This document shows positions 1 to 59,090 of a stretch of 64,000 nt of DNA, in pieces. The notes beneath the pieces were generated by a model. It saw nothing but the letters and a program-made list of their open reading frames with translations, did not search any database and was not told where the DNA came from. The DNA is taken from contig NC_042997.1 in the NCBI RefSeq assembly GCF_006345805.1, forward strand, positions 107,756,001-107,820,000, given 5' to 3'. The translations under genes were made by a program, and so were the position numbers. The number at the start of each line of letters is the position of its first letter. The stretch's first letter is position 1. The stretch comes from Octopus sinensis. Its lineage: Eukaryota.

Positions 1-786
1 GGCAAAAACAGGCAATGGAGCCTGCTGTGGCTCCCAGCCATACCAGCTCCTGTCAGATCATGTAACCCATGACAACATAGAAGATTATAAAATGATGGTG
101 GTGATGATAATGATGATAATTAGATCTGAATGAAATTCAACAAAGACAGCAATATTGATAACCTGACCTATTTTAATCTAATAATAGTTTTAGCAATAAA
201 AGTAACTATTTACAACAAAAAAAAAAAACCCAACTAATTTTTAAAATTGTCATGCCAGAAATTTTAATGAGGTCAGAATAGTGTCACCAACACAGTTTCT
301 TTTAATTAGAGAGATTTTATTCATTGGCTATGAGTTTAAAAATGAAAGGTGGGGATCAGAGATAGAGAGACATTGGTGTCTGTCTTTAAAAAGTTTCAAC
401 AGATAAACAAACTCTATACTTGAAAATATTTATTATATATTCACGTAAGAAAAATTCATGTTTAAAGAATTAATAAAGTTTACCATCATCAAAATCATTC
501 CAAATTCTAATGAAAACATGGCTACCCCTGCTTGTCCTAGTCATCCACCTCTCTACCGTCTCAAATAGTCAAGGGAGTTTTCCTTCTTTTCCTTTTTCTC
601 CCCTATTTTGTAAGCTACTCAGCAACTGCACAAGCACTAGTGGCACGAAACAGCTGTTAGAGACTCTATATCTATATTTTCTATCTAAATTGTCTTTTTC
701 AAGTGATGCCAAATGGTTTACCTTTTTTTCATTTTTACTTAATTCTAAAATAATTGTGAATATAGATTTATAAATATAGTTTTCCT

Positions 787-1120
787 CATCATCATACCTC
801 CGTTCTCCATGCTAGCATGGGTTGGACGGTTCGACTGTGGTCTGGGAAGCCAGAAGGCTGCACCAGGCTCTAGTCTGATCTGGCAGCGTTTCTACAGCTG
901 GATGCCCTTCCTAACGCCAACCACTCCGAGAGTGTAGTGGGTGCTTTTTACGTGCCGCCGGCACAGGTGCCAGGTGAGGCTAGCAACGGTCACGATCGGA
1001 TTGGTGCTTTTTACGTGCCACTGGCACGGAAGCCAGTCAAGGCGGCGCTGGCATCGGCCACGTTCGGGTGGTGCTTTTTACGTGCCACTGGCACGGAAGC
1101 CAGTCTAGGCAGCGCTGAAA
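787..1120 (-). mobile_element. RTE 3'-UTR fragment/SINE with CAT tail
   Basis: Matches 3913-4250; three copies of the GTGCC-NNN-GGCAC unit. Confidence 0.8.
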
Positions 1121-1458
1121 ACTATATATGTATGTGTGTGTGGTTTTTGTGACACCGCAAGAAGTTCTTAAATCTATTCAGCAAAGTTTCTAAGTCTCCT
1201 GTAAATTTGAACTGAAAAATTGGTCAAAAAACAATATATATTTATTTACTACCCACAAGGGGCTAAACACAGGGAACAAACAAGTACAGACAAACAGATT
1301 AAGTCGATTACATCGACCCCAGTGCATAACTGGTACTTAATTTATCGACCCTGAAAGGATGAAAGGCAAAGTTGACCTCGGCGGAATTTGAACCCAGAAC
1401 GTAGCGACAGATGAAATACGGCTATGCATTTCGCACGGCGTGCTAACGTTTCTGCTTC

Positions 1459-2035
1459 TGGGTTTGTCTAGCATATACTGTCAGAAATGTGCCTGGCCCT
1501 TATATCCCATTATACCATCTTCAATTGATAGTTGCCTCTTTGTTTTATGATATTTTCGTATCTGCTATAAACATATGGAAGTGATAATTTCAGATCACAT
1601 CATACCTTAGGCCATGCTGTGGTTTTTCCCTGTATGAACTACTTGACTGGCCCTTGTGCCGGTGGCATGTAAAAGCACCCACTACACTCTCGGAGAGGTT
1701 GGTGTTAGGAAGGGTGTCCAGCTGTAGAAATTTTGCTATTTCAGATTGAGCCTGGTGCAGCCTCTGGCTCATCATTTCTCAGTCAAACTGTCCAACCCAT
1801 GCCAACATGGAAAGCGGACGTTAAACAATGATGATGATGCTGCCACCACTGTCGCCACCGCCCGTAATAGTACTCAATACTTAGCTTGCTAATCTCGCAA
1901 ATATTGATACCCTATTTTGTGGGTTTGTCTAGCATATTCTGTCAGAAATGTGCCTGGCCCTTATATCCCATTATGCCATCTTCAATTGATAGTCACCTCT
2001 TTGGTTTATGATATTTTCGTATCTGCTATAAACAT
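1459..2035. repeat. 116-bp direct repeat pair
   Basis: 1459-1574 versus 1920-2035, about 5 mismatches. Confidence 0.9.
1640..1840 (+). mobile_element. RTE 3'-UTR fragment, (ATG)n tail
   Basis: aaaagcacccactacactctcggag...ggaaagcggacgttaaacaatgatgatgat; reverse complement of the 787-1120 family. Confidence 0.8.
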
Positions 2036-3912
2036 TACCAAGAAGGTTCTTAAAGTAAGGATTCATAATTTTCTAGTCCACTTACTGGTGTATTGCCAGT
2101 GTCTTTTATGTGTAAGAACTGACGTGATTTCAAACAATCTTGTCTGTCTCGTAAATACTGGAAGGTTTGTCTGTATTCCAGTAGTTTTCATCTCCATAAA
2201 AATGTTTTGGGCAAAAGTGTCTTAATTTCGTTTAGGCATGTAGCAGACCAGAAATTGTCTTTTGTTTTCCCTTCGTTTGTATTCTGTGTAACAGTTTGGA
2301 ATAACTGAAAAGGAAAAAAAATATTATATATAAAACCATTATTTGCCTTTGATTCATTGGAAAGACTGTAACTGGCTCAAGTCTTGTCTGAAAAATCTTT
2401 TACAAAAAAGAAATACTTTAAAAATCCTTTCCTCATTCTGTTTCTGGTAAAACTTGCTTTTCCTATCGGAACTGTTGTCAGAGTTGTTGCTTTCACATTT
2501 GGAATCAAAATTTCTGGTTCTCCATTGCAGGTGGCTATATTTGTTGCATATTGGTTTTACCCCCCCCCCCCCGCGAAAAATCCAAATCAGTATCTCTTCT
2601 TTTGAGTGAACTGGTGTCTATTTTTCTTTTCCAGTTGTGATGGGGTAAAAATATCTGAAAAATTAATAAATCTGTTAATTGCATATCTTGTTGGAGTTGC
2701 ATGTTTCAATGAGTGGAGCAGCAAGATTTTGTGTTGAGATTCTCATTTTAGATCGAGACAGGGTCATTTTAGCTGGTTTCCTATTTCAAGTCGTTTTCAT
2801 TGATCAGCGAGGAAATTGTTCTGATTGCACTGAGGTTCACTGAAATTATATAACTCTATGTTAGTTGTAATTGAGCTGATCTATGATCAAAGACATTCCA
2901 GTTGTGACTATCCCATCTTTTATTCGGATTTAACTATCTAATGTGGTCCAATATATTTTGAGGGAGATTTGGCTACTTTTTCTATTTAGGTTGAGTGATG
3001 TGTGTCACCCACAGAGACAATATGATCTGAATAAACATTTTACGTCCTTCGTTTGTCTGATTTAGTTGACTTCTTTCTGGCAATAAAATGCCATCACAGT
3101 GGCAAGGCTTTATCTTTCAGAAATATCTTTTAACCGTCAATTAGGTTGGATTAAGACCATTTCTTGGATTCAATTTGTATTTTTATTAATTTCTTTCTTA
3201 ACTCAGAAACTGAAAGTTGTGAGTTATATAAAAGCACTTGTCATCATCGTCGTCGTCACACCACTGAAATTAGCAAGCATTCTTTTCCTCCTTTGACCTA
3301 TTTTATTTCCAGTTAAACATTTTTTTCTTTTCTAATAATTTCTTTTAATTCCCACTTGATAAATTTATGGCATTTTTCAAAACATATTTACAACTATGCA
3401 TGTGTGTTTGGGTTCATAATTATTTTACTGGCCACTTTTCCATGCTGACATGGGTTGGACAAAACTTAATGAGACAATTTTTTCTTTCTATAGTCCCATG
3501 CTCTTCTTGTCACAAATCTTGTTTCCAAATAAAACATTGTTTCTTCTAGTCCTATTCAGACCTGTTAGTGGCCTTATATTTGTCTTGTTTGTTGTAATCC
3601 ATGTATATATTAACAAGAGTTGTCTTTCTGCTCCAAATTTTTTCCCACATGTCTGTTATATTTTGAATATTGTAATACATAGTGTTTAGTTGTCTATAAA
3701 TCCATACAGTAATTATATATATTACGTGATAGTGACCCTGCTCTGCTGCTGTTTATATCTGGTTTTTGTAGCATTTAAACAACTTGCTACCCCATCTTAC
3801 TGACCTTTTGGCCTCATGACAATTTGTCTTATTAATTTTACATAGTTCTTGCTACAAAACAAGATTTGAGGTTAATTTTCTGTGAATATTTTTCTTTTAT
3901 CTCCTCTGCTAC

Positions 3913-6767
3913 ATCATCATCATCATCATCATCATTTAGCGTCCGTTTTCCATGCTAGCATGGGTTGGACGGTTCTACTGGGGTCTGTGAAGCCAGAAGG
4001 CTTCATCAGGCCCAGTCAAATCTGGCAGTGTTTCTACGGCTGGATGCCCTTCCTAACACCAACCACTCCGTGAGTGTAGTGGGTGCTTTTTACGTGCCAC
4101 CCGCACTGGTGCCAGACAGAGCTGGCAAACGGCCACGAACGGATGGTGCTTTTTATGTGCCACCGGCACGAGGGCCAGGCGAGGCTGGCAACGGACACGA
4201 AACGGGGCGGTGCTGGCAACGGTCGCGAAACGGAAAGTTCTCTTACATGCCACCGGCACTGGTAACACATCTGCAATTTCCATTGATCGATTTCCATTGA
4301 TCGATTTCGATTCTGATCCTCACTTGCCTCAATGGGTCTTCACAAGCAGAGTTTCGACATGCCACCGGCACTGGTAGCACATCCGCAATTTCCATTGATC
4401 GATTTCGATTCTGATCCTCACTTGCCTCAACACGTCTTCACAAGTAGAGTTTTGTGTCCCAAGAAGGGAAGGTATGCATACGTAGGCTGGCTCCATCCCA
4501 TGTAGAAGGCCACGGGTTGTGGACTCACTTGTCCTGCCGGGTCTTCTCGCGCACAGCACACTTCCAGAGGTCTCGGTCTCTAGTCATTTCCTCAGTGAGA
4601 CCTAAAGTTCGAAGGTCGTGCTTCACCACCTCGTCCCAGGTTTTCCTGGGTCTGCCTCTTCCACAGGTTCCCTCAACCGCTAGGGTGTGGCACTTTTTCA
4701 CACAACTATCTTCATCCATTCTCGCCACATGACCATACCAGCGCAAACGTCTCTCTTGCACACCACAACTGATGCTTCTTAGGTCCAGCTTTTCTCTCAA
4801 GGTACTTACACTCTGCCGAGTGTGAGTACCGGCATTACACATCCATCGGAGCATACTGGCTTCATTTCTAGCGAGCTTACGCATATCCTCAGCAGTCACG
4901 GCCCATGTTTCACTGCCATGTAGCATGGCTGTTCGTACACACGCATCATACAGTCTGCCTTTCACTCTGTGCGAGAGGCCTTTTGTCACCAGCAGAGGTA
5001 AGAGCTCTCTGAACTTTGCCCAAGCTATTCTTACTCTAGCAGTTACACTTTCAGCACACCCACCCCCGCTGCTGACTTGGTCACCTAGGTAACGGAAACT
5101 ATCAACTATTTCTAGTTTTTCTCCCTGGAAAGTGACGGAAGTTGGTCTCAGAGCATTTTCAGTGTTTATTGAGCATCTGCCACATACAAAAACCATCTTC
5201 CTAGTTAGCCTTCCTTTGACATTGCTGCATCTCTTATGTGTCCATAGCTTACACTTGGTGCATCTTATAGAGTTTCTACCTACACCTTTTCTACAGATCG
5301 AGCAGGGCCATCTACCTGAAGGTGTTTGTGATTTGTCTACCTTCCTACTGATTACGACTTTGGTTTTAGCTAGATTGACTCTGAGGCCCTTCGATTCTAA
5401 TCCTTGTTTCCACACCTGAAACTTCTCCTCCAGTTCTGATAGCGACTCAGCAATTAGAGCAAGGTCATCAGCATAGAGGAGCTCCCAAGGGCATCCTGTC
5501 TTGAATTCCTCCGTTATTGCCTGGAGGACTATGATAAATAGGAGGGGGCTGAGTACTGAGCCTTGGTGGACCCCTACCTCTACCCGGAATTCTTCACTGT
5601 ACTCATTTCCAACCCTCACCCTACTAGCGGCGTCCCTATACATGGCCCGCACAGCTCTCACTAACCATTCATCTATCCCTAGTTTTCTCATTGCCCACCA
5701 GATAAGGGATCGGGGGACCCTGTCGAAGGCTTTCTCCATGTCAACAAAAGCCAGGTACAGGGGCTTATCTTTGGCTAGGTATTTCTCCTGCAGCTGCCTT
5801 ACCAGGAATATAGCATCAGTAGTACTTTTCCCTGGCACAAACCCAAACTGCATCTCATCTAAACTAACTCTCTCTCTAATTAGTTGGGCTATGACCCTCT
5901 CCGTAACCTTCATCACCTGGTCCAACAGCTTGATACCTCTGTAGTTATTTGTATCTAGGGCATCACCTTTACCTTTGTAGCAGTTGACTATTATACTGCT
6001 ACACCAGTCATTGGGTATGACCCCTTTGTGTATCACCTGATTAACTATATGGGTGACTAGGCTATAGCCGACACTACCAGACATTTTGAGCATCTCTGCA
6101 GTGATTCCTGATGGGCCTGGGGCTTTCCCTGTCTTCATGCTTCTAATTGCCTTAGCTACCACAGAACTATCAACTCGGATAGCTGGTCCCTCTGTTGGGT
6201 CAACATTCGGCAGACTCTCTTTATCCCATTCATTTTCTTCATTCAGCAACCTTTCATAGTGGCATCTCCAAACCTCTCTCTTCGCATCCTCATTTAGCGC
6301 AAGTGAACCATCTTCCATGCGAACACACTTCTCTCCTACCACATCACGATTCTCTCTCAAACACTGTCTTGCAACACGAAACACCTCCAGTCTTTGGTCC
6401 TCACGGCGCAGAACATTGGCAAATTTTTTCTTATCTGCTTCCCCTCTGGCTAAATAAACCTGTCTCCTAGCTTCTCTTTTGGCAGTCTGATACAATTCCC
6501 TGCTACCCCCATTTTTCCAGACCTTCCAAGCCTGTCTCTTTTCTCTAATAGCCCTGTCTACAATATTGTTCCACCACCACGTTATTCTAGGTCGAGAGGG
6601 GACTTTGCACCAGCCACAGATCTGGTCAGTGGCTCTCAGCAGGTTGTCCCTTAGAAACGTCCAGCTGTCTTCTACCCCCTGTGATGCTCTATCCCCTTCT
6701 ACTTCGTCAGAGGCTTCAAGTAATATGTCCCTAAATCTCTGTCCATTTGCAGGATCTTTAAGCTTCC
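3913..6767 (-). mobile_element. 5'-truncated RTE-clade LINE with uninterrupted RT frame and (ATG)n tail
   Basis: ORF 4525-6495 (YADD motif, QGSVLSP, zinc-finger-like CSICRK..CTKC); the frame stays open upstream to ~6770; 3' UTR 4524-3935; (CAT)7 tail at 3913. Confidence 0.92.
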
Positions 6768-6872
6768 TAATTTCTTATCAACTGCTCTTTCCATTTTATT
6801 TTATTTGGGAGTATTTTTATGATTAAACTTTATTTAGCGGCAGATGACTCCTCACCTTCATTCATGATGTTT

Positions 6873-9003
6873 ATCATCATCATCGTTTAACATCCGCTTT
6901 CCATACTGGCATGAGTTGGACAGTTTAATTGAGGGCTGGTGAGCCAGAAGGCTGCACCAGACTCCAATCTGATCTAGCAAAGTTTCTACAGCTGGATGCC
7001 CTTCCTAATGCCAATCATTCCAAGAGTGTAATGGGTGCTATTTATGTGCCACCGCTATGAGGGCCAGTCAGGCGGTATTGGCATCAACCACGCTCAAATG
7101 GTGCTTTTTATGCGCCACTGGCACCGGAGCCAGTCAGGCAGTACTGGCAACAGCCACATTTGAATGGTGATTTTTTTTTATGTGCCACTGGTACAGGATC
7201 CAGTCAGGCGATGCTGGTGACAATCAAGCTTGAATGGTGCTATTAACGTGCCACTGGCATGGGTGCCAATCAGGTGGTACTGTCATCGGCCATGACAACA
7301 ATTTTACTTGCCTTAGCAACTTTTTGCAAGCGCAGTTTATTGCCCAATGATTGAAGGGTGCTCTTAAATGGGCTGGTTATGCAACACTGACATAGGCCAC
7401 GGTTATGGTCTCACTTGGCTTGCTGAGTCTTCTTAAGTACAGCATATCTCCAAAGACCTCAGTCACTTGTCATTGCCCCTGTGAGGTCCAGTGTTCGAAG
7501 GTTGTGCTTCACCACCTCATTGGGTCTACCTCTTCCACAGGTTCCCTCAACTGCTAGGGTGTGACACTTTTTCATACAGCTGTCCACATCCATTTGCAAC
7601 ACATGACCATACCAGCGCAGTCGTCTCTCTTGCACACCACATCTGATGCTTCTTAAGTTCAACTTTTCTCTTGGGGCACTGTCGAGTATGCACACTGGCA
7701 TTACACATCCAGTGGAGCATACTAGCTTCATTCCTTGTCAGCTTACACGTGTATGTAGCATGACTGTTCACACACATGCGTTAAGAGCTCTCTGAACTTT
7801 GCCCAGGCTATCCTTACTCTAGCAGCTACACTTTCAGAGCATCCACTCCTGCTACTGACTTGGTCCCCTAGGTACTGGAAGCTATCAACTACTTGTATTT
7901 TTTCTCCTTGGAATGTGATGGAAGCTGTTCTCTGCACATTTTCAGTGTCTATTGCTCCTGAGCATTTGCCACATACAAAAACTATCTTCCCAGTTAGCCT
8001 TCCTTTGATATTGCTGCATCTTTTATGTGTCCATAGCTTACACTGGGTACATTTTATAGAGTTTCTACCTACGCCTTTTCAAAAATCGAGCAGGGCCAAA
8101 TACCTGAAGGGATTTGTGGTTTGTCTGCCTGCCTACTTATTAAGACTTTGGTTTTTGCTAGGTTAACTCTAAGGCCTTTCAATTCTAGACCTTGCTACCA
8201 CACCTGAAACTTCTCCTCTAGTTCTGATAGTGACTCAGCAATTACAACAGGGTCATCAGCATAGAGAAGTTCCCAGGGGCAGCCTGTCTTGAATTCATTC
8301 CTCTGTTATTGCCTGGAGGACTATGATGAATAAGAAGGGGGCTGAGGACTGATCCTTGGTGGATCCCTACTCCTACCCAAAATTCTTCACTGTACTTGTT
8401 GCCAACCCTCACCTTACTGACAGCATCCCTGTACATGGCTTGTACAGCTTTCACTAACCATTCATCTATCCCTAGTTTCTGCAGTGACCACCAGAAAAGG
8501 TATCTGGGGACCCTATCAAAGGCTTTCTTTATATCAATGAGAACCAAGTACAGAAGCTTATCTTTGGCTAGGTATTTCTCCCGTAGCTGTCTTACCAGGA
8601 ATATAGCATCAGTGGTGCTTTTCCCTGGCACAAACCCAAACTGCATCTCATCTAGACTGACTCTCTCCCTAATTAGTCGGGCTATGACCCTCTCTGTGAT
8701 TTTCATTACTTGATCCAATAACTTGACACCTGTAATTAAGTGGATCTAATTGCATCACCTTTACCTTTGTAGCAGTTGACTATGGTGCTGCTACACCAGT
8801 CATTGGGCATGACTCCTTCATGTATCTTATCACCTGGTTGACTATACAGGTGACTAGACTATAGCTAACACCGCCAGATATTTTAAGCATCTCTGTTGTG
8901 ATTCCTGATGAGCCGGGGGCTTTCCCTATCTTCATACCCTTAATTGCTTTATCTACCAAGGTACTGTCAATTCTGATAGCTGGTCTCTCTGTTGCGTCGA
9001 CAT
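6873..9003 (-). mobile_element. Degraded 5'-truncated RTE LINE, same family
   Basis: Frameshifted fragments (8242-8718, 7743-7937, 7459-7731) closely resemble the 4525-6495 protein; same 3' UTR and CAT tail. Confidence 0.9.
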
Positions 9004-10006
9004 GTTGTTAATCCTAAACAATGGTTAGATTGTTAAACCTGATCAGGCAGACTTATGGTCAAAGTTAATCCAGCCATGACTGCCTCATCTTATAGTGTAT
9101 CTAGGACTACAATGTTTTTTTCTAGTGTTTTAGGTGACGTTTTGTTGGTAATGGTGTAATAGATAGCTAAAGACATCCAAATGAACTTTATTGGTTCCTC
9201 TATTGATGGAATATAGATTTGTTAGAAACTGGGTGTGTCTTAGCTCCAGCAGTAGATGAGGCAAGTTTGGAGTCAGTTAGGTTTGCAAGGTGAATATTGA
9301 TAATATTAAAATGTTTTGTTGGTCATGTACCGAGGTGGGATCTCTAAATATTTGGATTGGTGATTCAGTCAGTTCCAACATATTGGTTGTTTGGTTGGTA
9401 GTTTCACAACAGTAGTAACATTCTGTCCCAAATAAATGCCTACTTTGTCCATTTTTGTGGTTTATTCAAAAAATGAAGGGGGAACAGTAATATTGATGGT
9501 GAAGTGGAAATGGAAGCCAGAAGTTGAGGTGGTTCTTTTAGCAATCAGAAATCAACACTTCAACATATTGTTTGACTACAGATTAATAGCACATTGAACT
9601 ACGTAACCAAGGTAGCTAAGGGCCAGTTGATGTCAGTCATTGTATTTTAGTTGAGTAGTGAGACTTTGAACCTAGGAGTAATGGGTTTCTGGTTTCCTTT
9701 TTATTTGACTCTGCCAGAGTAATGACTATGGTCTCCTCTTTTCACAGTTAGTCAAAACGAATTCAAATCTTTAAATTATAGAAACAAATTAATAGAAAAA
9801 TTTGGGCTTGAGGCCAGCAATTTTGAGGGTTTGGGGTTAGTCATGACTATTGACCTCAGCACTAGACTGGTACTTTATTATATTAACCCTGCAGTAACAA
9901 AAGACAAAGTTGACCTCCGCTGGATTTGGACACAGAACTTGTCAGAGAAAGCTCTGCAAAGCATTTTGTTTTCCAACATTCTTATGGTTCTGCCTGCTCA
10001 CCACTA

Positions 10007-10208
10007 CACTTTAGCATTTAAACTGACCATATCCTGTTTTACTTTCAAACTGACTAGATCCAGCCTCTCACACCTATCTACAATGTCATTCTAAAAATAA
10101 GCAGTCACATCATTGAAATTTTGGAGTTAGAGAATAATGCCTGATTAATTCAAAGCAATGTGAATGAATAAGCATTGCATTTGACAGTGAGGTCTAAATG
10201 CTAAAGGG
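10007..10208. mobile_element. Second TTAA MITE family (TIR CCCTTTAGCATTTA)
   Basis: ctttagcatttaaactg...ctaaatgctaaaggg|TTAA; homologous copies at 18840-19058 and (truncated) 19402-19545. Confidence 0.7.
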
Positions 10209-11171
10209 TTAAGAGACCTGTATGGAAATAACAATATATGTTAAGGCAACTCTCTCTTCAAAACCTCTTTTATTGTTTATTCAAAGAGGAAAAGGAAAGA
10301 TTTTAAAGACATCTCTAAACTGCTGAGGGAAAGCAATCATTGGTGATAATAAAACAGATATTCAATGGCCTCTAACAGAGGCACAAGGCCTGAGATTGTA
10401 TTAAGGTGATTGGGAGATTAATAATAATAATAGTCTGAAGAGTTGAACAATGTTGCCTAACACTTGTACCTCTCACAACTGTTGTTTATACGAGGAACAT
10501 TGAAATATATTTTATATTTTTGGATATTGGAATGCCTGGCCATTACTGTTTTCAGCATTTTTCAAGCCGTGTGAAAATTGAGAGGAGTAATTACAATTAA
10601 GATTTCATTTTAGTTGTCATTCAAGTTTTATGTTTAAAGAAAATTACTAAGAAATAATAGATTGTTGCTGTTGAAATATTTGCAGCTCTTTGGTAGGACA
10701 ACTAGTAAAACCATGAGCATTTGTATGAACTGAGTAAATATTTTTAATGTTAATCATCATCATCATAATCTTTTAATGTCTGCTTTACATACTGGCATGG
10801 GTTGGACAGTTTGACTGAGAACTGGCAACTCTGAAGGCTTTACCAAGCTCCAATCTGATCTGGCAAGATTTCTACAGCTGGATGCCCTTCCTAATGCGAA
10901 CCACTCCGAGAGCGTAGTGGATGCTTTTTACGTGCCACATATTCCAAGCTGCTGACTTTTAAAATTATTCTTATTTTTCTGTACTTACTAATTTTTATTT
11001 TCACTTGAATTTTCTCTGGATACCTAGTTCTAATATGGAAATTGCTGTTTCAATGCCCTTTTGACACTCCACACCCTCAACTCAATTTTGATTTTTAATT
11101 TTCATGTTAAAAGAAAAAAATATTTGTTCAGTGAAATTGAAATTTTGCTTTGTACTGATTTTCTTTTGTAG

Positions 11172-11275
11172 GAATTGGTATGGACTCGAGTGTGACACCC
11201 CTGCGGCACGGTGGGCTCTCATTGGTACAAACAACGGACTTTTTCTATCCCCTTGTAGATGACCCTTACATGATG
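11172..11275 (+). CDS. SPS2: Selenophosphate synthetase (SelD/SPS), first coding exon visible in window
   Basis: tag|GA ATT GGT ATG...; translates (G)[34 protein letters not shown], matching the SPS family; ends ATG|gtaag. 104 bp. Confidence 0.95.
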
Positions 11276-12233
11276 GTAAGTAGTCCTTCAGATATTTTTA
11301 GCCATGGGGAACAAAAACGTTACTCTAAACATGTTAATCTGTCTCACTTGTCAAGTCTTTTGTACCCAAAGGTTTTTAAGAAGACTGGGACCATAAACAG
11401 CTCATGGCTAAACACTTCTTAATATTCCAATTTTATCTAAGGTGGCAAGCTCACAGAATTGTTAGCATGCCAGGCAAAATGTTTAGAGGCATTTAGTCAG
11501 TCTTTGCTTTTCATCCTTTCAAGAGGTCAATAAAATAAGGACCAGTTGCATGGGAGATGCATTCAGTTTAACCCCCAGCACCCACTCCCTGCCATTCTCT
11601 GAACTTGCATGCTTTGTGCCAGAATTTGAAATCCATATTTCAGTTTTATCCAAATCAACGTTTTAAGTAATAAATATAAGAATAAGATAATGTAAAAATA
11701 TTATTTTGCTACCTTGAGATTTATGTGATAATTTATTTTAGAAAATTGTAATGTAAACAGGAATTAGTAAAATAAAGAAAAAAAAAGCTGTTTAAAAAAA
11801 TCAAGGAGATCCAATAGATAAGGAATTCAAATATTTGGTGAGAGGGGTGGATTAAAAATTAACGAGTATTGGGAAAATTAGCCATAAGAGTGTTGGAAAA
11901 CAATTTGTTTTTGCTCACTGTTGTCTGCATTTAGTATGTTGTTCAAGCAGAAGGCGCTCATTAGATATATGTCATTAATAACCTAATTAGTGAATTAACT
12001 CTAAATTCTTTCTGTGGTTCATTGAAGAGACGTTTATCACTGTAAAGTACTTATTCCTTCAGCCCATAGTGTCATTTAATCAATCTAAAGAAAATTCAGA
12101 GTACCCCATTGCTTCCCTTTTTTGTTTTGGTAGTGGCGGTGGTGGGATCCTAAGGTTTAATTAATCTGCACTTTGCTCTCTGTCCTTCATGCAGGTATTG
12201 CTAGGCAAAGTTCTAGTGGCTACATCAGTTTAG

Positions 12234-18589: not shown

Positions 18590-18739
18590 GGTAAAATTGC
18601 TTGTGCCAATGTGTTAAGTGACTTGTATGCCATGGGCGTCACTGAATGTGACAATATGCTCATGTTGCTTGGTGTCAGTAATAAAATGACAGAAAAAGAA
18701 AGAGATGTGGTCGTTCCAATTATGATGCGTGGTTTCAAG
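18590..18739 (+). CDS. SPS2: Selenophosphate synthetase exon
   Basis: Long poly-T tract + ag; [50 protein letters not shown]; donor gtcagt; phase matches neighbours. Confidence 0.95.
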
Positions 18740-19322: not shown

Positions 19323-20127
19323 AAACAATTCAAAAGGAATCAGTGGATTTGGGAAATAGAAATGAAATACTTTGGTATTTCATTGTTTTTATTGATTTTA
19401 ACCTTTTAGCATTTAAACTGACCATATCCAGCCTAAATATTCTTGTTGTTTTATGTTCAAACTAGCCGGATCTGGCTTCTCACACCTTCCCGAGAATGTC
19501 ATTCTAAAAAAAAAAAATAAAGTATCACATCTTTGCAATCACAAAACTACAAGATAGTAGATACCATATTTGATGGCCTACAAGATGTACCTTTTTTTTA
19601 TCCCAAAATGGCTTTAAAAAAACCCCTGTGTCCAGTGCATTCAATGTAGGCTCAAAAAACTCAGACTGCATTTCTGATACTATATTTTATAAGAAAGAAC
19701 ATGGTAATATCAGAGGGGGAAGGGTTTGTGGATGGCAAGGCATTACAAAACGTGTGCTGCCATCTGTCTGTGGTATGTTTAAATTGAATGTGGATGCAAT
19801 AAATTGCTTATAATTACTGCTAATAACATAAAGTGGAGGAATTAAAACATTATTTTAGTAGTAATTTATTTTACAAAAGTATAGCCTAGGCTGGGTGTGT
19901 TCTATGCAATCGTGCATCTCATAGGCCATCAAATACAGTAATTAATTCAAAACAATGTGAATAAATAAGAATTACATATGACAGAGCAATCTGAATTTCT
20001 AAGAATATAAGAAAATGAAAGTCTTAGCCAACTTGGAATTTCAGGTTTGGTTGATGTAAGAATTCTGATGTAAATCTTGAGGGAAATATTTAACATTTTA
20101 ACAATTTGAAGAAAAGTTACCATCAAT

Positions 20128-24309: not shown

Positions 24310-24422
24310 GACTTGGCTGAAGATGCTGGCACCCAGGTATCAGGTGGTCAAACAGTTATTAATCCCTGGCTGACCATTGGTGGAGTAGCAACTACAGTAT
24401 GTCAACCGAATGAATTTATAAT
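24310..24422 (+). CDS. SPS2: Selenophosphate synthetase exon
   Basis: aag|[37 protein letters not shown]+AT|gtaagg. Confidence 0.95.
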
Positions 24423-25812: not shown

Positions 25813-26003
25813 GCCAGACAATGCTGTAGTGGGTGACGTTCTTGTTTTGACCAAGCCCCTGGGTACTCAGGTTGCTGTGAATGCCCATCAATGGTTAGAT
25901 GAACCTGAACGAATGTCTCGGCTCAAAATGGTTGTCAGTGAAGACGATATTCGTAAAGCTTATCACAGAGCAATGTGCAGCATGTCAAGACTAAATCGCA
26001 CTG
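25813..26003 (+). CDS. SPS2: Selenophosphate synthetase exon
   Basis: ttcag|G completes Met; [63 protein letters not shown]+G|gtatgt. Confidence 0.95.
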
Positions 26004-26348
26004 GTATGTGTTACGATTTACCTTACTAATATCTTCTTATAATGATAATAGACTCAACCAACCACACTTAGTGTGTATGAGTTCCATCTTACGCTCCTCT
26101 CGCTTCTACAGTAAGAGTTACTCCTTTGCTTTTGTTACTGTTACAATATTTATTCTCTTGACGAATGTATTCGAATTTACCGTTTCTATCAACAGCACTT
26201 AGTGTTCTTTTTTTTTAAAAGAAATTTCGAATCATCGTTTCTTTTTTATTGTATTTTAAAAAATTAATTCTAAATAAAATTTTGATCATTCTGTAACTAT
26301 TAATGGCTTCATCTCATTTGAATGCTTATTTTTTGTTGTTCTTTCCAG

Positions 26349-26561
26349 CTGCTAGACTGATGCACAAATATAATGCACATGGTGCCACTGATGTCACAGG
26401 CTTTGGCCTAATTGGCCATGCAAAGAACTTGTCAAAAATTCAGAAAAACGAAGTCAGTTTTGTCATTCACAATCTGCCAATAATTGCCAAAATGGCTGCT
26501 GTCAGTAAAGCCAGTGGAAATATGTTTGGATTGTTTCAAGGACAGTCCGCAGAAACATCTG
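26349..26561 (+). CDS. SPS2: Selenophosphate synthetase exon
   Basis: ccag|(A)[27 protein letters not shown]...GQSAETS+G|gtaag; contains the conserved TDVTGFG motif. Confidence 0.95.
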
Positions 26562-27180
26562 GTAAGTTGACAACTAAAGCATTGATGTCTCTATTTCTTT
26601 TACATTAGCTGATTCTGTGTGCATGCGTTTACAGCTGTTACTACATTTTGGGACTGGCTTTCCCTTGAAGGCAAATGAAAGTAAAAATCCTTCATCCATT
26701 GCTACACAACAATTTCAACTTTGCCATACTTTGAGTGATACAGACATTTTGATATTTTGTAAATTATTTAGAAAACTTTCATACTAAAATTTTATCATTA
26801 ATTTAGAAATTAAAATTTTATTAGTAAATCTGGTACCATGTAAAAAGCACTTGTAGCAATGCCCCATAAAAAGCACTGGTGCTGGTGCCACGATGTTTAG
26901 AAAACAAAGTAAATCTACTCCAGAATAGTTGAAAAGTTTCGTTCTCTTTGTCCAGCACCGTTTACAGTACCAGAAAGTTTGAAATTTCTGATTGTCTCCA
27001 TATCCTCAATGAGTTAGGCTTGATACAATTTGTTTTTGTAGCATTTGAAAAAAAATCAGTCAAGTTCACAATTATGGTGTATGAAACTTTTATTTAATAA
27101 CAGTAGAAATAAGGCCCCTCGCCCCACCTTAAAAAAACGAAAGTTGTGTTAAAAAATGTTAGATGGCTTAGAATGTTTAA

Positions 27181-27975: not shown

Positions 27976-28160
27976 GTGGTTTGCTGATTGCGCTTCCCCG
28001 AGAACAAGCTGCTGCATATTGCAAAGATATTGAAAAGCAAGAGGGGAACCAAGCTTGGATTATTGGAATTGTGGAGAAGGGCAATCGAACTGCCCGAATC
28101 ATCGACAAACCGCGGGTAATAGAAGTACCAGCAAAGGAAAAAGATGGAGAATTGTGGTAA
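27976..28160 (+). CDS. SPS2: Selenophosphate synthetase terminal coding exon
   Basis: tgtag|(G)[60 protein letters not shown] then TAA at 28158-28160. Confidence 0.95.
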
Positions 28161-30205
28161 TCGCCTCCCCCTCCTTCCTAGTTCTACCAATGGTTATGTG
28201 GACCAACAAGTGGGCATAATGTTGTGAGGAGTTGGTAACGAAGTTCAGAAATGGTTAAATCTTTAACAACAAAACAATTTTTAGAGCTTTTGTTGAGAAA
28301 TGTAATTCCTCTAACAAAATCATCAAAGTTTTTAGTTTAATCTTAATTCCTGGTCACTGATTTCTAATCTCAATTTTTGATCATTTTTCTCTTTTAGATT
28401 AGTTTAATCTTTGTATTTTGGGCATTTCTTTATGGTAACATTTTGATTTTCAAATTTGAAAAATCAAAACTCTTTTATTGTATTTCAACTTTAATAGTAG
28501 CGTATTTAACTAAACTTGTCTGTTTTCACCTTAATTTAATCTCTTTTACAGAAATAGTAATTTTTAAAAACTTTTTATTCATACAATTGCAATTTTTATC
28601 TCTAGCAGACACATATGAACGAATAATATGAATTTTTCTGGCTTAAAATAAATTCCTGTTCTGAGGTTTAAATGTTACCAAATGCTTCTGGAGTGGTCAG
28701 ATTTTAGAGTTTAATTTAGAGAGAATAAGATGAGAATGAGGAGGAGGAGGAGGAGGAGTATTTCAGGCCAATTTACTATAATTTGGTACCAGAACTGCTG
28801 GAATTGTCTTCTCTTGCCATAGCTTTATTTATCAAAAACTATTTTCGCACATTTCAACACAGAGCCAGAATAATTTACGTTTTCTGCCTAAATTTTTCTC
28901 TTAAACACTTAAATATTTTCTGGAAATAACCACTTCTATCTTGGAATTGTTTTTTTAGCCATTTAAAAACAAAGAGAAATCGTTCAGATCATTTTGTCCA
29001 TGATGGAATTTTTCAGTTTCAACAGATTTAGTCAATTCACTTGCCAAATAAGTACAACTTTGAAATTTCTAAAAATAATCTAAGGTCTTGTTTGTTTCCT
29101 CACTCTATTCTAGATAATATATATTTAATATGACCTGAAAAATCTCCAGTATTTCTGCTACTGCAACAGTTAAGAATTATCTTTTTCAAAATTTAGAAAG
29201 TTTTGTCTTATTACTTCAAACTTTTGAAAATTGTTCCAACTTTGATGTGAAGTAATTTTTTTCAATGTTTTCTAAAAAATGAATTAATGTGCTATTTTCT
29301 ATAAATGCCTCTGCTTTTGTGTTCCATAAAAGAAGAAAAATGGATTTGTTTGCTTCTCTTTTGCAATTATATTTGCCCCTTTTATATTGGTTAAAAGTCC
29401 TTGTCCATGTAAATATTGGTTGAACCGCTGAACATAAATTGAACTTTGACTGGTCTTTGATATAAGCTAATCAATAGTTACTGTCCATTCCATTCCAAGG
29501 CATTTTGCTTTGTCCAGGGTTGTTGTCATTCAATTCTAACCACAGTTAGGAATCCTGCATCCGACTTTTCTTTTTTTTTTCTCATTTCATCTCCACTTTT
29601 CAGCCACTCTCATCCCGTCCTTCCCCCAAGTCCTTTTTCTAGTAAACATAAATAACTTTGTTCATTAAGTTTTGGCATTCATTAAGGATCTACTTTGGAA
29701 AATTGAAGCTGGTTTAAAAAAAAAAAGCAAAAAAATTTTATTTTACAAAATTTTATTTTTTCTTCGTAGAAAATGTTGTTTAAAATTTGATGCAAAAATC
29801 GTGTTTTTGTAACTTAATTTGGTATTTTTACTGTCCCCTAATATTTTTTCTTGCTTCCTTCAGAATACCCTTTACAATTTTGTAACATTTTTATTCTGCT
29901 AAGGAAGCAATAAAAAATAGCGCATATTCAACTGTAAACAGGGACCTGTTTTTGGTTGCCAATAAAACCAGAAATGTCTCCCTAATATTGTGGTTCCATC
30001 CCTGGAGAACAACTGTCTGTTGAGAAAGCTGCTGGTTTTTAGGAGTCAATTTTTTTCTATGTATAATTTTTTTTTAAATGTTCAAAAGAATTTTTTTGTA
30101 AATTTTTCTTGTGTTGTTAATTCTAGTTTTGTACTAATGAGACCTTGAGCAAGTCCTGTACATCTAGATATTTAGTTCCAGGAAATCTCTTGTTGAAAGC
30201 TGTTT

Positions 30206-30276
30206 AATGGTCATCTTAATGAAATGACATTGGGAATTCGATGTCGAACCAGTGGCATGGATAACTGATGACCATT
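30206..30276 (+). promoter_or_regulatory. Type II SECIS element in the SPS 3' UTR
   Basis: Helix I AATGGTCATC/GATGACCATT (10/10); core ATGAA...GGAT; helix II ATGACATTGG/CCAGTGGCAT (one mismatch, one G-U); unpaired AA 12 nt after ATGA; apical mini-helix TTCG-ATGT-CGAA. Confidence 0.88.
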
Positions 30277-30314
30277 TTACGTTCAACGTGATTTCCAATC
30301 ATCTTTAAATCAGA

Positions 30315-30320
30315 AATAAA
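30315..30320 (+). terminator. Probable distal polyadenylation signal of SPS
   Basis: AATAAA ~40 nt after the SECIS, followed by a GT/T-rich tract (ctgttttctgtgttttttt). Confidence 0.6.
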
Positions 30321-30433
30321 ACACCAGTTTCACCAGATTTCTGTTTTCTGTGTTTTTTTTTTTCTTTTCTTGGAATATTGATGAAGGATGGCTTTGATGT
30401 GAATCTTTTGTTTATAACTGCTGAGTTGTTTTT

Positions 30434-30902
30434 GAGTGTTGGGCCTCACGGAGGCAAGGTGGCTGAGTTCCTTTCGAGTGGACCTCATGAAGGCGAGATG
30501 TCTGAGTTCCTTTCGAGTGGGCCTCACAGAGGCGAGGTGGCTGAGTTCCTTTCGAGTGGACCTCATGAAGGCAAGGTGGCTGAGTTCCTTTCGAGTGGAC
30601 CTCATGAAGGCGAGGTGGCCGAGTTCCTTTCGAGTGGACCTCATGAAGGCGAGGTGGCCGAGTTCCTTTCGAGTGGACCTCATGAAGGCGAGGTGGCCGA
30701 GTTCCTTTCGAGTGAGCCTCACGGAGGCGAGGTGGCCGAGTTCCTTTCGAGTGGGCCTCACGGAGGCAAGGTGGCCGAGTTCCTTTCGAGTGGGTCTCAC
30801 GGAGGCGAGGTGGCTGAGTTCCTTTCGAGAGGGCCTCATGAAGGCGAAGTGGCCAAGTTCCTTTCGAGTGGGCCTCACGGAGGCGAGGTGGTCGAGTTCC
30901 CT
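30434..30902 (+). repeat. 39-bp minisatellite, 12 units
   Basis: Consensus GAGTGGRCCTCAYGRAGGCRAGGTGGCYGAGTTCCTTTC; gives 13-aa repeats (GPHEGEVAEFLSS) in ORF 30378-30965. Confidence 0.95.
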
Positions 30903-32690: not shown

Positions 32691-32940
32691 TCGATCTCAG
32701 TACTTTTTTTACTTTTTAAGCTTGGTATTTACTCTGTTAGGCTCTTTTGCCGAACTGCTAAGTTACGGGAACTTAAAAATATCAACACTGGTTTTCAAGA
32801 GGCTGTGAGGGATAAACGCAGACACACACACATGCACGCACGCACGAACGAACGCGCGCGCGCTCACACACACACACACACATACACACACACACGACGG
32901 ACTTCTTTCAGTTTCCGTCTACCAAATCCACTCACCAAAG

Positions 32941-33016
<76 letters not shown>

Positions 33017-57380: not shown

Positions 57381-59090
57381 ATTATTATTGATTTGACTCA
57401 GATTTGGTCTTATTCGGTTTACTGCATGTAATCTTAAACATTTAATAGTCTTTCCAGTGCTTAGACCTCCTGATAATCTTTCCTACCCTAAGAGGCAAAC
57501 TTTTTCTCTAAAGGACATTCTATTCCAGTCTCCTTCAACCATTTGTCCATATTTTTGTTTACAGTTCCCAATGCACCAATTATTATAGGCATAGCCTTTA
57601 CAGTTTTCATATTCCAAATTCTTGCAATTTCAGATCTTAAAGGATTGTAATTCTTTTTGTTTTTCGTCTTCTTTCTTCACAATTCTGGAACGAAACGGAC
57701 ATGGTAGATCAATTAATAAGCAACTTCGCTTTTCCCTGTCTATTATTGTTATGTTTGGTCAATTATTTTCTAGCTTCTTGTTTGTTTGAATAAGTCCCAC
57801 AGAATCTTAAAATTCTGCGGCTCCAGGACTCTTTCGACTCGATGTTCATACCATGTATCTTCAGCTAAAAATCCCCATTTCTGGCAAAGTTTCTAATGTA
57901 AAACTTTAACAACTTGGTCATGTCTCCATTTCTTGTGAATATATGTGAATATATTCCTTCTTAACCAGAACTGGGCAGCCAGAGATAATATGATTTATTG
58001 CTTCTTGTCCATCTCCACATATTCTGCAGTTACTTGTTATATTTCTTTTCATTACATGTTTTTGGTAATTTCTGGTGGGGAGACTTTGGTCTTGTGCTGC
58101 AATTAAAAATCCCTCTGTCTCTGCTTTGAGTCCTGAGCTTCTCAACCATTGCTGGATTTTGCCTAGCTCCAGGATCCCAAGTTACTTGTACCCATCATCA
58201 CCCGGGCCTTCTATTTTCTCTCCGTTTGGCAATTCTATGACCCTACAATTTACTCTTTACCCCCGCTTCAAAGTAAGCACCGCACTCTTCGAGATACCGA
58301 ATTCCATCCCTATATCTTTGCTGCACACTTGCATAGTCTCAGCCAGCCTCTCCACTTCAGGCCCTGTTTTCGCGAACAGTTTTAAATCATCCATGAAGCG
58401 AAGGTGGTTGAGACGAGGTCCGTTCTTTCTCAGCTCATAGTGCGCGTTGACTTTGCGTAGGACTACAGAAAGTGGCATCCAGGCTATAACAAATAACAGA
58501 GGTGAACAAGAGTCACCTTGGAAGATGCCTCTTTTGATTGTTATCTCAACTAAGTGCTGGTTGTTACAGGAAATATGTGTTTTCCAACTAGGCATGCTGT
58601 TCTTAATCAGTTCACACACGTTCTCAGCTATTCCACACATGGCGAGCGTTTCCAAAATAAACGAATGCGGCAACATGTCGTAAGCCTTTGAGAAATCTAT
58701 CCAATGCAGGCATAAGTTTTTTAGTATCGTTTATAGATCTTCATTATAAACTTCTCTATCCCAAGATGGTCCTTGGTGCCCTTGGATCCTTTTCGGCATC
58801 CCTTTTGTTCTACTGGCAGTAGATTGTTTTCCGCAAGGAATGTATATATTTTCCCTGTGAGGGTACCTGTTAATACTTTCCATAGAAGGTTAAGACAAGT
58901 AATGGGTCGGCAGTTGCCAACTTCATTGCCCTTAGATCGATCTTTCATTAACAATATTGTTTTCCTCTCTACCATCCACTGCGGAACTGCACCGCTATGT
59001 AAGCAATTGTCTAATCGCAACGCACTTCTCTCGTGTGTTGACCTGCGCCACTTGAGCCAGTAGCCTTGGACTCCGTCTGGTCCTGCCGCT
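57381..59090 (-). mobile_element. R4/Dong-like non-LTR retrotransposon (RT, CCHC, RLE), 5'-truncated and decayed
   Basis: NCRPITCLNLLWK, EQKGCRKG, KRGIFQGDSCSPLLF, FMDDLKL, LIAAQDQSL..CRICG....INHIISGC; (AAT)n at both ends. Confidence 0.88.

Follow-up and report, generated by a model that had tools for sequence, protein, structure and literature searches.

A predicted type II SECIS element 2 kb into the 3′ UTR of an octopus selenophosphate synthetase gene annotated as inactive

Introduction

In Octopus sinensis, a selenophosphate synthetase (SPS) gene that public annotation lists under an 'inactive' name is followed, about 2 kb beyond its stop codon, by a hairpin resembling a SECIS element. 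Is this gene itself a selenoprotein gene, with a UGA codon read as selenocysteine (Sec) in an exon further upstream, or does the hairpin have another explanation? The SPS2 product generates the selenium donor used in Sec synthesis. The duplications that generated SPS1 have been placed only in vertebrates, tunicates, clitellate annelids and insects, while other metazoans have a single Sec-type SPS2; the text of the same paper names no SPS duplication in molluscs, describes SPS1 forms as SECIS-less, with Arg, Thr, Gly or Leu in the Sec position, and emphasizes that misannotation is usual for selenoprotein genes (Mariotti et al. 2015, PMC4561486). Here, we analysed a stretch of 64,000 nt of O. 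sinensis DNA (the window) for which a sequence-only reading had proposed a type II SECIS and a Sec-containing SPS2.

Materials and methods

The sequence derives from GCA_006345805.1, CM016859.1, where it begins at about 107,756,001; locus L086 is 100% identical to window positions 1180-38160. Exons were called by tblastn with a human SEPHS1 query, combined with splice sites, reading frame and transcript L087, a Logan transcript assembly (SRR3401912) from a congener that shares 94-98% nucleotide identity with the window exons. The strict SECIS scan demanded an [AG]TGA core, an AA 9-13 nt further on, no fewer than 9 stacked pairs in helix II and 8 pairs in helix I, and internal loops not exceeding 6 nt. 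The second scanner was SECISearch-like, joining the pattern to constrained ViennaRNA energies.

Results

Six coding exons of a selenophosphate synthetase gene

The following features make up the part of the gene that lies in the window, given under the SPS2 designation argued for below:

11172-11275, + strand: first SPS2 coding exon within the window, ending ...DDPYMM (tblastn, splice sites and frame; 97% nucleotide match to L087)
18590-18739, + strand: SPS2 coding exon, ending ...MMRGFK (tblastn, L087 match, splice sites and frame)
24310-24422, + strand: SPS2 coding exon, ending ...NEFIM (tblastn, L087 match, splice sites and frame)
25813-26003, + strand: SPS2 coding exon, ending ...SRLNRT (tblastn, L087 match, splice sites and frame)
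26349-26561, + strand: SPS2 coding exon, ending ...SAETSG (tblastn, ORF list, L087 match, splice sites and frame)
27976-28160, + strand: last SPS2 coding exon, including the TAA stop at 28158-28160 (tblastn and frame; Pfam domains on the joined protein)
28161-30340, + strand: predicted 3′ UTR of about 2.2 kb, its end taken from the AATAAA

The sequence-only reading had set the first in-window exon at ~11171; the exon exists, but it starts at 11172, behind a TAG acceptor. Joined together, the exons encode a protein with Pfam matches to AIRS (1.2e-13) and AIRS_C (4.5e-18) and with 74% identity to the human SEPHS1 query. Residues of human SEPHS2, e.g. SAETSG, appear to be kept in the octopus protein. 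The gene is very long, with a first intron that already exceeds 11 kb in the part seen in the window. The 101-aa ORF at 26303-26608 had no exact match in the sequence collection.

Other features of the window were recorded alongside. The long SPS2 intron 5′ of exon 11172 harbours, on the minus strand, a 656-aa reverse-transcriptase ORF (4525-6495) with RVT_1 and a weak PHD finger, as well as a second, decayed copy that is 85% identical (8242-8718), and a further reverse-transcriptase fragment occupies 58257-58676 on the minus strand. Exons of a sodium:solute symporter (SSF) gene are located at ~49.4-56.4 kb on the minus strand, convergent with SPS2, in an arrangement for which tblastx showed synteny with the Argonauta locus. 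Many long ORFs are artefacts of very long CA/TA/GT microsatellites and of homopolymer-codon tracts (32865-33011, ~35.0-35.7 kb, ~39.9-41.4 kb and 50.4-52.0 kb).

A hairpin with type II SECIS architecture

Two features close the predicted 3′ UTR:

30206-30276, + strand: predicted type II SECIS element (sequence, fold, pattern and energy scans with shuffles, Argonauta conservation and compensatory changes)
30315-30320, + strand: poly(A) signal AATAAA, inside the block AATAAAACACCAGTTTC and identical in Argonauta

Type II SECIS elements combine a kink-turn quartet, a bulged AA and, above the bulge, an additional mini-stem at the apex, and it is the mini-stem that separates them from type I. On inspection, the plus strand at 30206-30276 has this textbook architecture, reading AATGGTCATC-TTA-ATGA-A-ATGACATTGG-G-AA-TTCG-ATGT-CGAA-CCAGTGGCAT-G-GA-T-AACT-GATGACCATT. 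Helix I is formed by AATGGTCATC (30206-30215) and GATGACCATT (30267-30276) with 10 out of 10 pairs, and above it sits an internal loop of 3/4 nt. The core sets ATGA (30219-30222) on the 5′ side opposite G-GA-T (30259-30262) on the 3′ side, where the GA occupies 30260-30261, and yields the quartet U.U, G.A, A.G, A.G. Helix II pairs 30224-30233 with 30249-30258 and is interrupted by a single A.G mismatch (9 of 10 pairs). Next, a G-AA stretch remains unpaired at 30234-30236, its AA (30235-30236) lying 12 nt past the A of ATGA, in a one-sided 3-nt bulge facing no unpaired bases on the opposite strand. The apical mini-stem TTCG/CGAA (30237-30240 with 30245-30248) has 4 bp and closes a 4-nt loop.

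Thus, the features that the sequence-only reading had enumerated (a 10-bp helix I, the ATGA/GA core, a 10-bp helix II, an AA at +12, a mini-helix and a subsequent AATAAA) are all in place, with helix II paired at 9 of its 10 positions. The unconstrained minimum free energy fold returns the same architecture at -28.6 kcal/mol (z = -4.0), and 1 of 200 dinucleotide shuffles folds as well. The element begins 2,046 nt 3′ of the SPS TAA stop on the sense strand, in line with the spacing of ~2 kb that had been claimed, and the AATAAA at 30315-30320 follows 39 nt downstream of it. About 120 nt past this poly(A) signal, a 39-bp minisatellite begins (30440-30900; 11.8 copies, 90% matches), which yields spurious ORFs of 167-195 aa on both strands.

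The selenocysteine codon in orthologues and the truncated public models

An exon bearing the Sec codon had been predicted to lie upstream of the window, and the data agree with this placement. Neither motif search nor tblastn detected a Sec exon in 1-11171, GCK-type motifs, whether preceded by TGA or not, are absent from all frames of 1-11400, and the first 213 nt of L087 are unmatched in the window. The protein encoded by L087 is identical to the window SPS over all 315 residues and carries an in-frame TGA at the N-terminal Sec site. Its first 213 nt match one exon of Argonauta hians (L088 5438-5650, 92% identity), which lies 4.35 kb 5′ of the next exon, contains a genomic TGA at L088 5535-5537 and ends in ...PRIG followed by gtgagt, in phase with 11172. 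Transcripts L090-L093 and L100-L101, representing two homologues with proteins 95-96% identical, likewise have an in-frame stop at the Sec site (...LKG-stop-GCKVSQEV). All of the 15 sequences ranking nearest in a comparison with 58 related SPS sequences, most of which stem from metatranscriptomes, have TGA at this site; proximity was ranked by identity, as a neighbour-joining tree of 59 SPS sequences resolved poorly and did not place the octopus gene in a clade. Judging from these orthologues, the upstream exon of O. sinensis would be expected to have TGA, too.

Beginning 11 nt past the Sec UGA, a stem of ~15 bp lies both in L087 (98-160; -23.7 kcal/mol, z -1.8) and in L088 (5535-5597; -22.9 kcal/mol, z -1.6). 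It is thus present in both octopods, at a position that matches the SRE of UGA-containing SPS genes; such stem-loops after the UGA have been reported for all UGA-containing SPS genes (PMC4561486).

The NCBI protein of O. sinensis (P0121) comprises 315 aa, is 100% identical to the joined exons and has the Met of GIGMDSS in exon 11172 as its first residue. It lacks the N-terminal active-site region entirely and is named 'inactive selenide, water dikinase-like protein'. Automated models had been anticipated either to truncate the gene or to call it SPS1, and both have happened here. The Argonauta SPS model is truncated in the same way.

Ends of the transcript and a possible second product

How far the mRNA extends bears on whether the SECIS is part of it. 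Transcript L087 spans 28161-28352 of the UTR, and a 26-nt patch at 29401-29426 is common to the 3′ UTRs of transcripts L090-L092. No transcript over 28353-30276 was found among the matched transcripts, 10 small ORFs from 28443-30298 had no exact match in the sequence collection, and the support for the UTR length comes from the 29401-29426 patch and the Argonauta alignment. From these, the mRNA would run to the AATAAA at 30315.

Three further AATAAA motifs precede the SECIS in the 3′ UTR, at 28647, 29909 and 29961, and the Argonauta alignment has AATAAA strings also at the positions aligned to 29909 and 29961. These signals could end some transcripts before the SECIS. An unlikely extension is that one unduplicated SPS2 locus gives two products: the SECIS-containing mRNA ending at 30315 would provide the Sec enzyme, and shorter mRNAs ending at the 28647, 29909 or 29961 signals would lack the SECIS and provide an SPS1-like isoform, the post-UGA stem-loop promoting non-Sec read-through. 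If true, such a locus would represent the 'regulated SECIS inclusion' that was suggested for the ancestral SPS gene of metazoans and never demonstrated (Mariotti et al. 2015, PMC4561486), and the unusually distal position of the octopus SECIS would make the idea testable here.

Conservation in Argonauta and the covariance models

We return to the hairpin as the SECIS of SPS2 and to its orthologue in Argonauta hians. Window positions 29294-30366 align to the Argonauta 3′ flank with 68% identity and many indels, which are not multiples of three, and the aligned region stops just beyond the common AATAAAACACCAGTTTC block. The orthologous SECIS is found at L088 22346-22420, 1.46 kb after the SPS stop there. 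The element itself aligns without gaps and retains CTTAATGAAATG, the 3′ GA and CTGAT. Each helix shows one double compensatory change (helix I C-G to G-C, helix II C-G to U-A, mini-stem U-A to G-C); in addition, an A-U pair has become G.U, and the A.G mismatch of Octopus is a U-A pair in Argonauta. Standard pairs fill 91.7% of pair cells, as compared to 19-48% with the 3′ partners shifted by 1-3 columns; the covariation comes from two distinct sequences only, which leaves a shuffle control without power. Both a de novo RNAalifold prediction and the single-sequence fold of Argonauta (-27.2 kcal/mol, z = -4.7) give the same structure, with an Argonauta mini-stem of 3 bp.

The canonical AA is replaced in Argonauta, where the GAA bulge of Octopus reads CCA. 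CC-type SECIS elements are rare, with vertebrate SELENOM and SELENOO as examples, and with its CCA, compatible with this variant only, the Argonauta element is possibly of the CC type. Conserved CC-type SECIS candidates were likewise seen in L008, L011 and L014. Besides, the Argonauta SPS2 locus and its SSF-transporter neighbour occur twice in the assembly, on different scaffolds (L088, BAAFZT010000002.1; L089, BAAFZT010000006.1). In L089, the SECIS is at 19962-20036; the SECIS stretch and the translation of the Sec exon are the same in both copies, and the gene spans are unequal in length. The doubling may stem from a haplotig, from duplication in the assembly or from a segmental duplication of recent date.

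Covariance models had been put forward in the sequence-only reading as a check on the element, a failure counting towards its refutation; those of Rfam did not recognize it. Rfam 15 cmscan reported no SECIS family in the whole window, in 30100-30400 or in 30200-30282 (an 83-nt slice), even at E <= 10. The controls were equally negative: at the gathering score, no SECIS was reported in 20 related SPS loci, including TGA-bearing transcripts and textbook hairpins such as that of L046, and none at E <= 10 in 5 of these loci. Since the Rfam models miss the related SPS loci as well, their miss at 30206-30276 weighs little and is uninformative rather than a refutation. A MAFFT alignment of SECIS elements across taxa was unsuccessful, also with N-padding for register. 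Of two models built here, R1 (a single-sequence model from L046) matched only L046 and its close relative L056, with filters off, too, and R2 (Octopus plus Argonauta) matched the SECIS in L001, L013, L007 and L046 at 13-16 bits (E = 0.3-1.7), among false matches. R1 being too specific and R2 scoring low, they furnish no independent model-based E-value for the window SECIS.

The Rfam result and the lack of conservation of the AA motif in Argonauta are also what could be cited for a conserved structured 3′ UTR element of another role that resembles a SECIS by coincidence, be it a microRNA precursor, a stability or localization hairpin or an L7Ae-type kink-turn. The best overlapping Rfam match is indeed to a microRNA family, mir-4841, yet with 17.7 bits (E = 0.8) it falls far below the gathering score of 100. 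Moreover, the positions invariant between Octopus and Argonauta are exactly the SECIS-defining ATGA and GA, with stems that co-vary around them; the in-frame TGA in orthologues of the host gene requires a SECIS, and this hairpin is the sole candidate within the UTR. We therefore regard such a coincidental resemblance as very improbable.

Chance expectation

Could a hairpin of this kind arise by chance in AT-rich non-coding DNA, with the real SECIS, if any, elsewhere? Across both strands of the window (128 kb), the strict scan gave 1 match, which is the SECIS at 30206-30276, and 400 block-wise dinucleotide-preserving shuffles, again on both strands, gave a mean of 0.0625 strict sites. With the energy-based scanner, 3 candidates were obtained in the window, that at 30206-30276 being the best by far (-26.5 kcal/mol), and shuffled sequences reached this energy or a better one with 0.095 candidates per window. 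By itself, the pattern is thus about a 1-in-10 to 1-in-16 (6-10%) chance event per 128 kb, and a comparable candidate in this share of shuffled windows is what a chance origin has in its favour. The match falls, however, on the sense strand and within that 1.7% of the sequence searched in which a SECIS would have to lie; given its location within the ~2.2 kb from stop to poly(A) signal, the chance expectation drops to ~0.001. A chance hairpin would also leave unexplained the orthologous Argonauta site with its compensatory changes, in a block that ends at the common poly(A) signal, and a relaxed scan from the SPS stop to 30400 returned no competing credible SECIS candidate. An accidental origin is accordingly even harder to entertain than a different function.

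A SECIS of another gene, and the related SPS loci

Equally hard to sustain is the proposal that the SECIS belongs to another, unannotated selenoprotein gene with its last exon in 28161-30206 and that the SPS gene is a SECIS-less UGA read-through form: although insects have SECIS-less SPS1-UGA genes with a hymenopteran read-through element (PMC4561486) and many related TGA-type SPS cDNAs showed no SECIS in at least 1 kb of UTR in our scans, no ORF longer than 62 aa is present in 28161-30206 (nor in the UTR as a whole, 28161-30340), the Octopus-Argonauta indels there are not multiples of three, synteny reveals just the convergent SSF transporter gene downstream, and a mollusc SPS duplication is not named in the paper text (PMC4561486).

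Several related TGA-type SPS transcripts, e.g. L046, L056 and L037, have a SECIS of the same design as the octopus SPS2 element. At the nucleotide level, no conservation of the window UTR was detected in relatives outside the cephalopods. No SECIS was found in the six longer of the L090-L101 transcripts, with UTRs of up to 1.5 kb, and the SECIS of these transcripts is presumably located past the ends of the contigs. The related genomic contig L002, which has TGA and 3′ flanking sequence of 1.8 kb, contained no convincing SECIS.

The wider set of relatives is of interest in its own right. Among JGI metatranscriptome SPS cDNAs that are 82-87% identical to the octopus protein, the Sec site is TGA in 33, Arg (CGN or AGA) in 26 and Leu in 2; Arg codons were assigned to loci L024, L026, L027, L039, L054 and L057-L085, Leu codons to L049 and L050, and TGA to 33 loci. 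In the neighbour-joining tree, a large Arg-type clade stands beside a TGA-type clade. This suggests that the Arg-type clade consists of SPS1-like duplicates in marine invertebrates, possibly beyond the four duplications of 2015. In the TGA-type transcripts L028-L034, L040 and L043-L045, neither scanner reported a SECIS in up to 1.3 kb of UTR (1.0-1.3 kb in L031, L032 and L043); either the SECIS of these transcripts is further downstream or non-canonical, or they are SECIS-less UGA forms. In other TGA-type SPS transcripts near the octopus sequence, we observed hairpins with a UUGA core in place of AUGA/GUGA and otherwise canonical geometry (L018 2877-2993, also L019 and L020; L006 ~2081-2199; L015 ~1952-2070; L001 900-984); in L018, a poly(A) tail follows ~0.3 kb past the element.

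Discussion

Taken together, the window very probably contains the six 3′ coding exons of O. sinensis SPS2/SEPHS2 together with the 3′ UTR, with 30206-30276 as the SECIS that recodes the upstream UGA of this gene. The earlier proposal of a Sec-containing SPS2 gains support from the conserved SECIS and from the TGA in L087, in the Argonauta genome and in L090-L093 and L100-L101, that is, from orthologous sequences. Octopus SPS2 appears to be the unduplicated metazoan form and itself a selenoprotein.

Mechanistically, the tandem sheared G.A pairs of the AUGA/GA core would fold the SECIS into a kink-turn. SECIS-binding protein 2 (SBP2) would bind this kink-turn and recruit eEFSec together with Sec-tRNA(Sec) to ribosomes that have paused at the UGA, which in the mRNA should lie ~3.1 kb 5′ of the SECIS and whose exon in the genome should be located 5′ of exon 11172, at a distance of more than 11 kb. 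The in-frame UGA in the N-terminal ...LKG-U-GCKVPQ... would then be read as selenocysteine and not as a stop, probably aided by the stem-loop that follows it. The protein-binding and recoding steps are those of established eukaryotic Sec insertion, and the present tests addressed the RNA features alone.

The result corrects public annotation, in which the NCBI SPS proteins of O. sinensis and Argonauta hians are without the catalytic Sec/GCK motif. Taken at face value, the 'inactive' label of the O. sinensis protein would imply cephalopods without an active selenophosphate synthetase; this SPS1 name reflects annotation transfer and is no description of the octopus gene. SPS2 is a marker gene for selenocysteine use, and its confirmation indicates a working Sec pathway in octopods. 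Besides, the locus adds a new mollusc data point to the history of SPS1/SPS2 duplication. In a literature search, we found no paper describing a cephalopod SPS2 or its SECIS. As to its biology, octopus SPS2 is a new, mis-annotated example of the well-established metazoan SPS2 with a 3′ UTR SECIS, and ordinary in this respect.

Compared to known systems, the octopus gene resembles metazoan SPS2/SEPHS2 (PMC4561486) in its SelD-type AIRS/AIRS_C architecture, the UGA at KG-U-GCK in its orthologues, the single SECIS in the 3′ UTR and the post-UGA stem-loop, the latter again in orthologues. It departs from the described metazoan SPS2 in being a cephalopod member with a very long gene, a SECIS 2 kb into the UTR and a public model that is truncated and misnamed. 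The hairpin itself shares with type II SECIS elements the AUGA/GA quartet, the 10-bp helix II, the AA at 12 nt, the 4-bp mini-stem, the 10-bp helix I and the 3/4-nt loop, whereas the placement of the octopus AA in a one-sided 3-nt bulge, the Argonauta CCA and the miss by the Rfam SECIS models set it apart. With SPS1 of the Drosophila SelD/Sps1 type, the octopus protein has ~83-86% identity to insect proteins bearing the 'inactive' name; unlike SPS1, the octopus orthologues have TGA at the Sec site and the octopus gene has a SECIS. Finally, an in-frame UGA followed by a stable stem-loop is also a feature of insect SPS1-UGA (PMC4561486), yet the octopus gene has downstream of it a canonical SECIS, which the insect genes lack, so that Sec insertion is to be expected here rather than SECIS-independent read-through.
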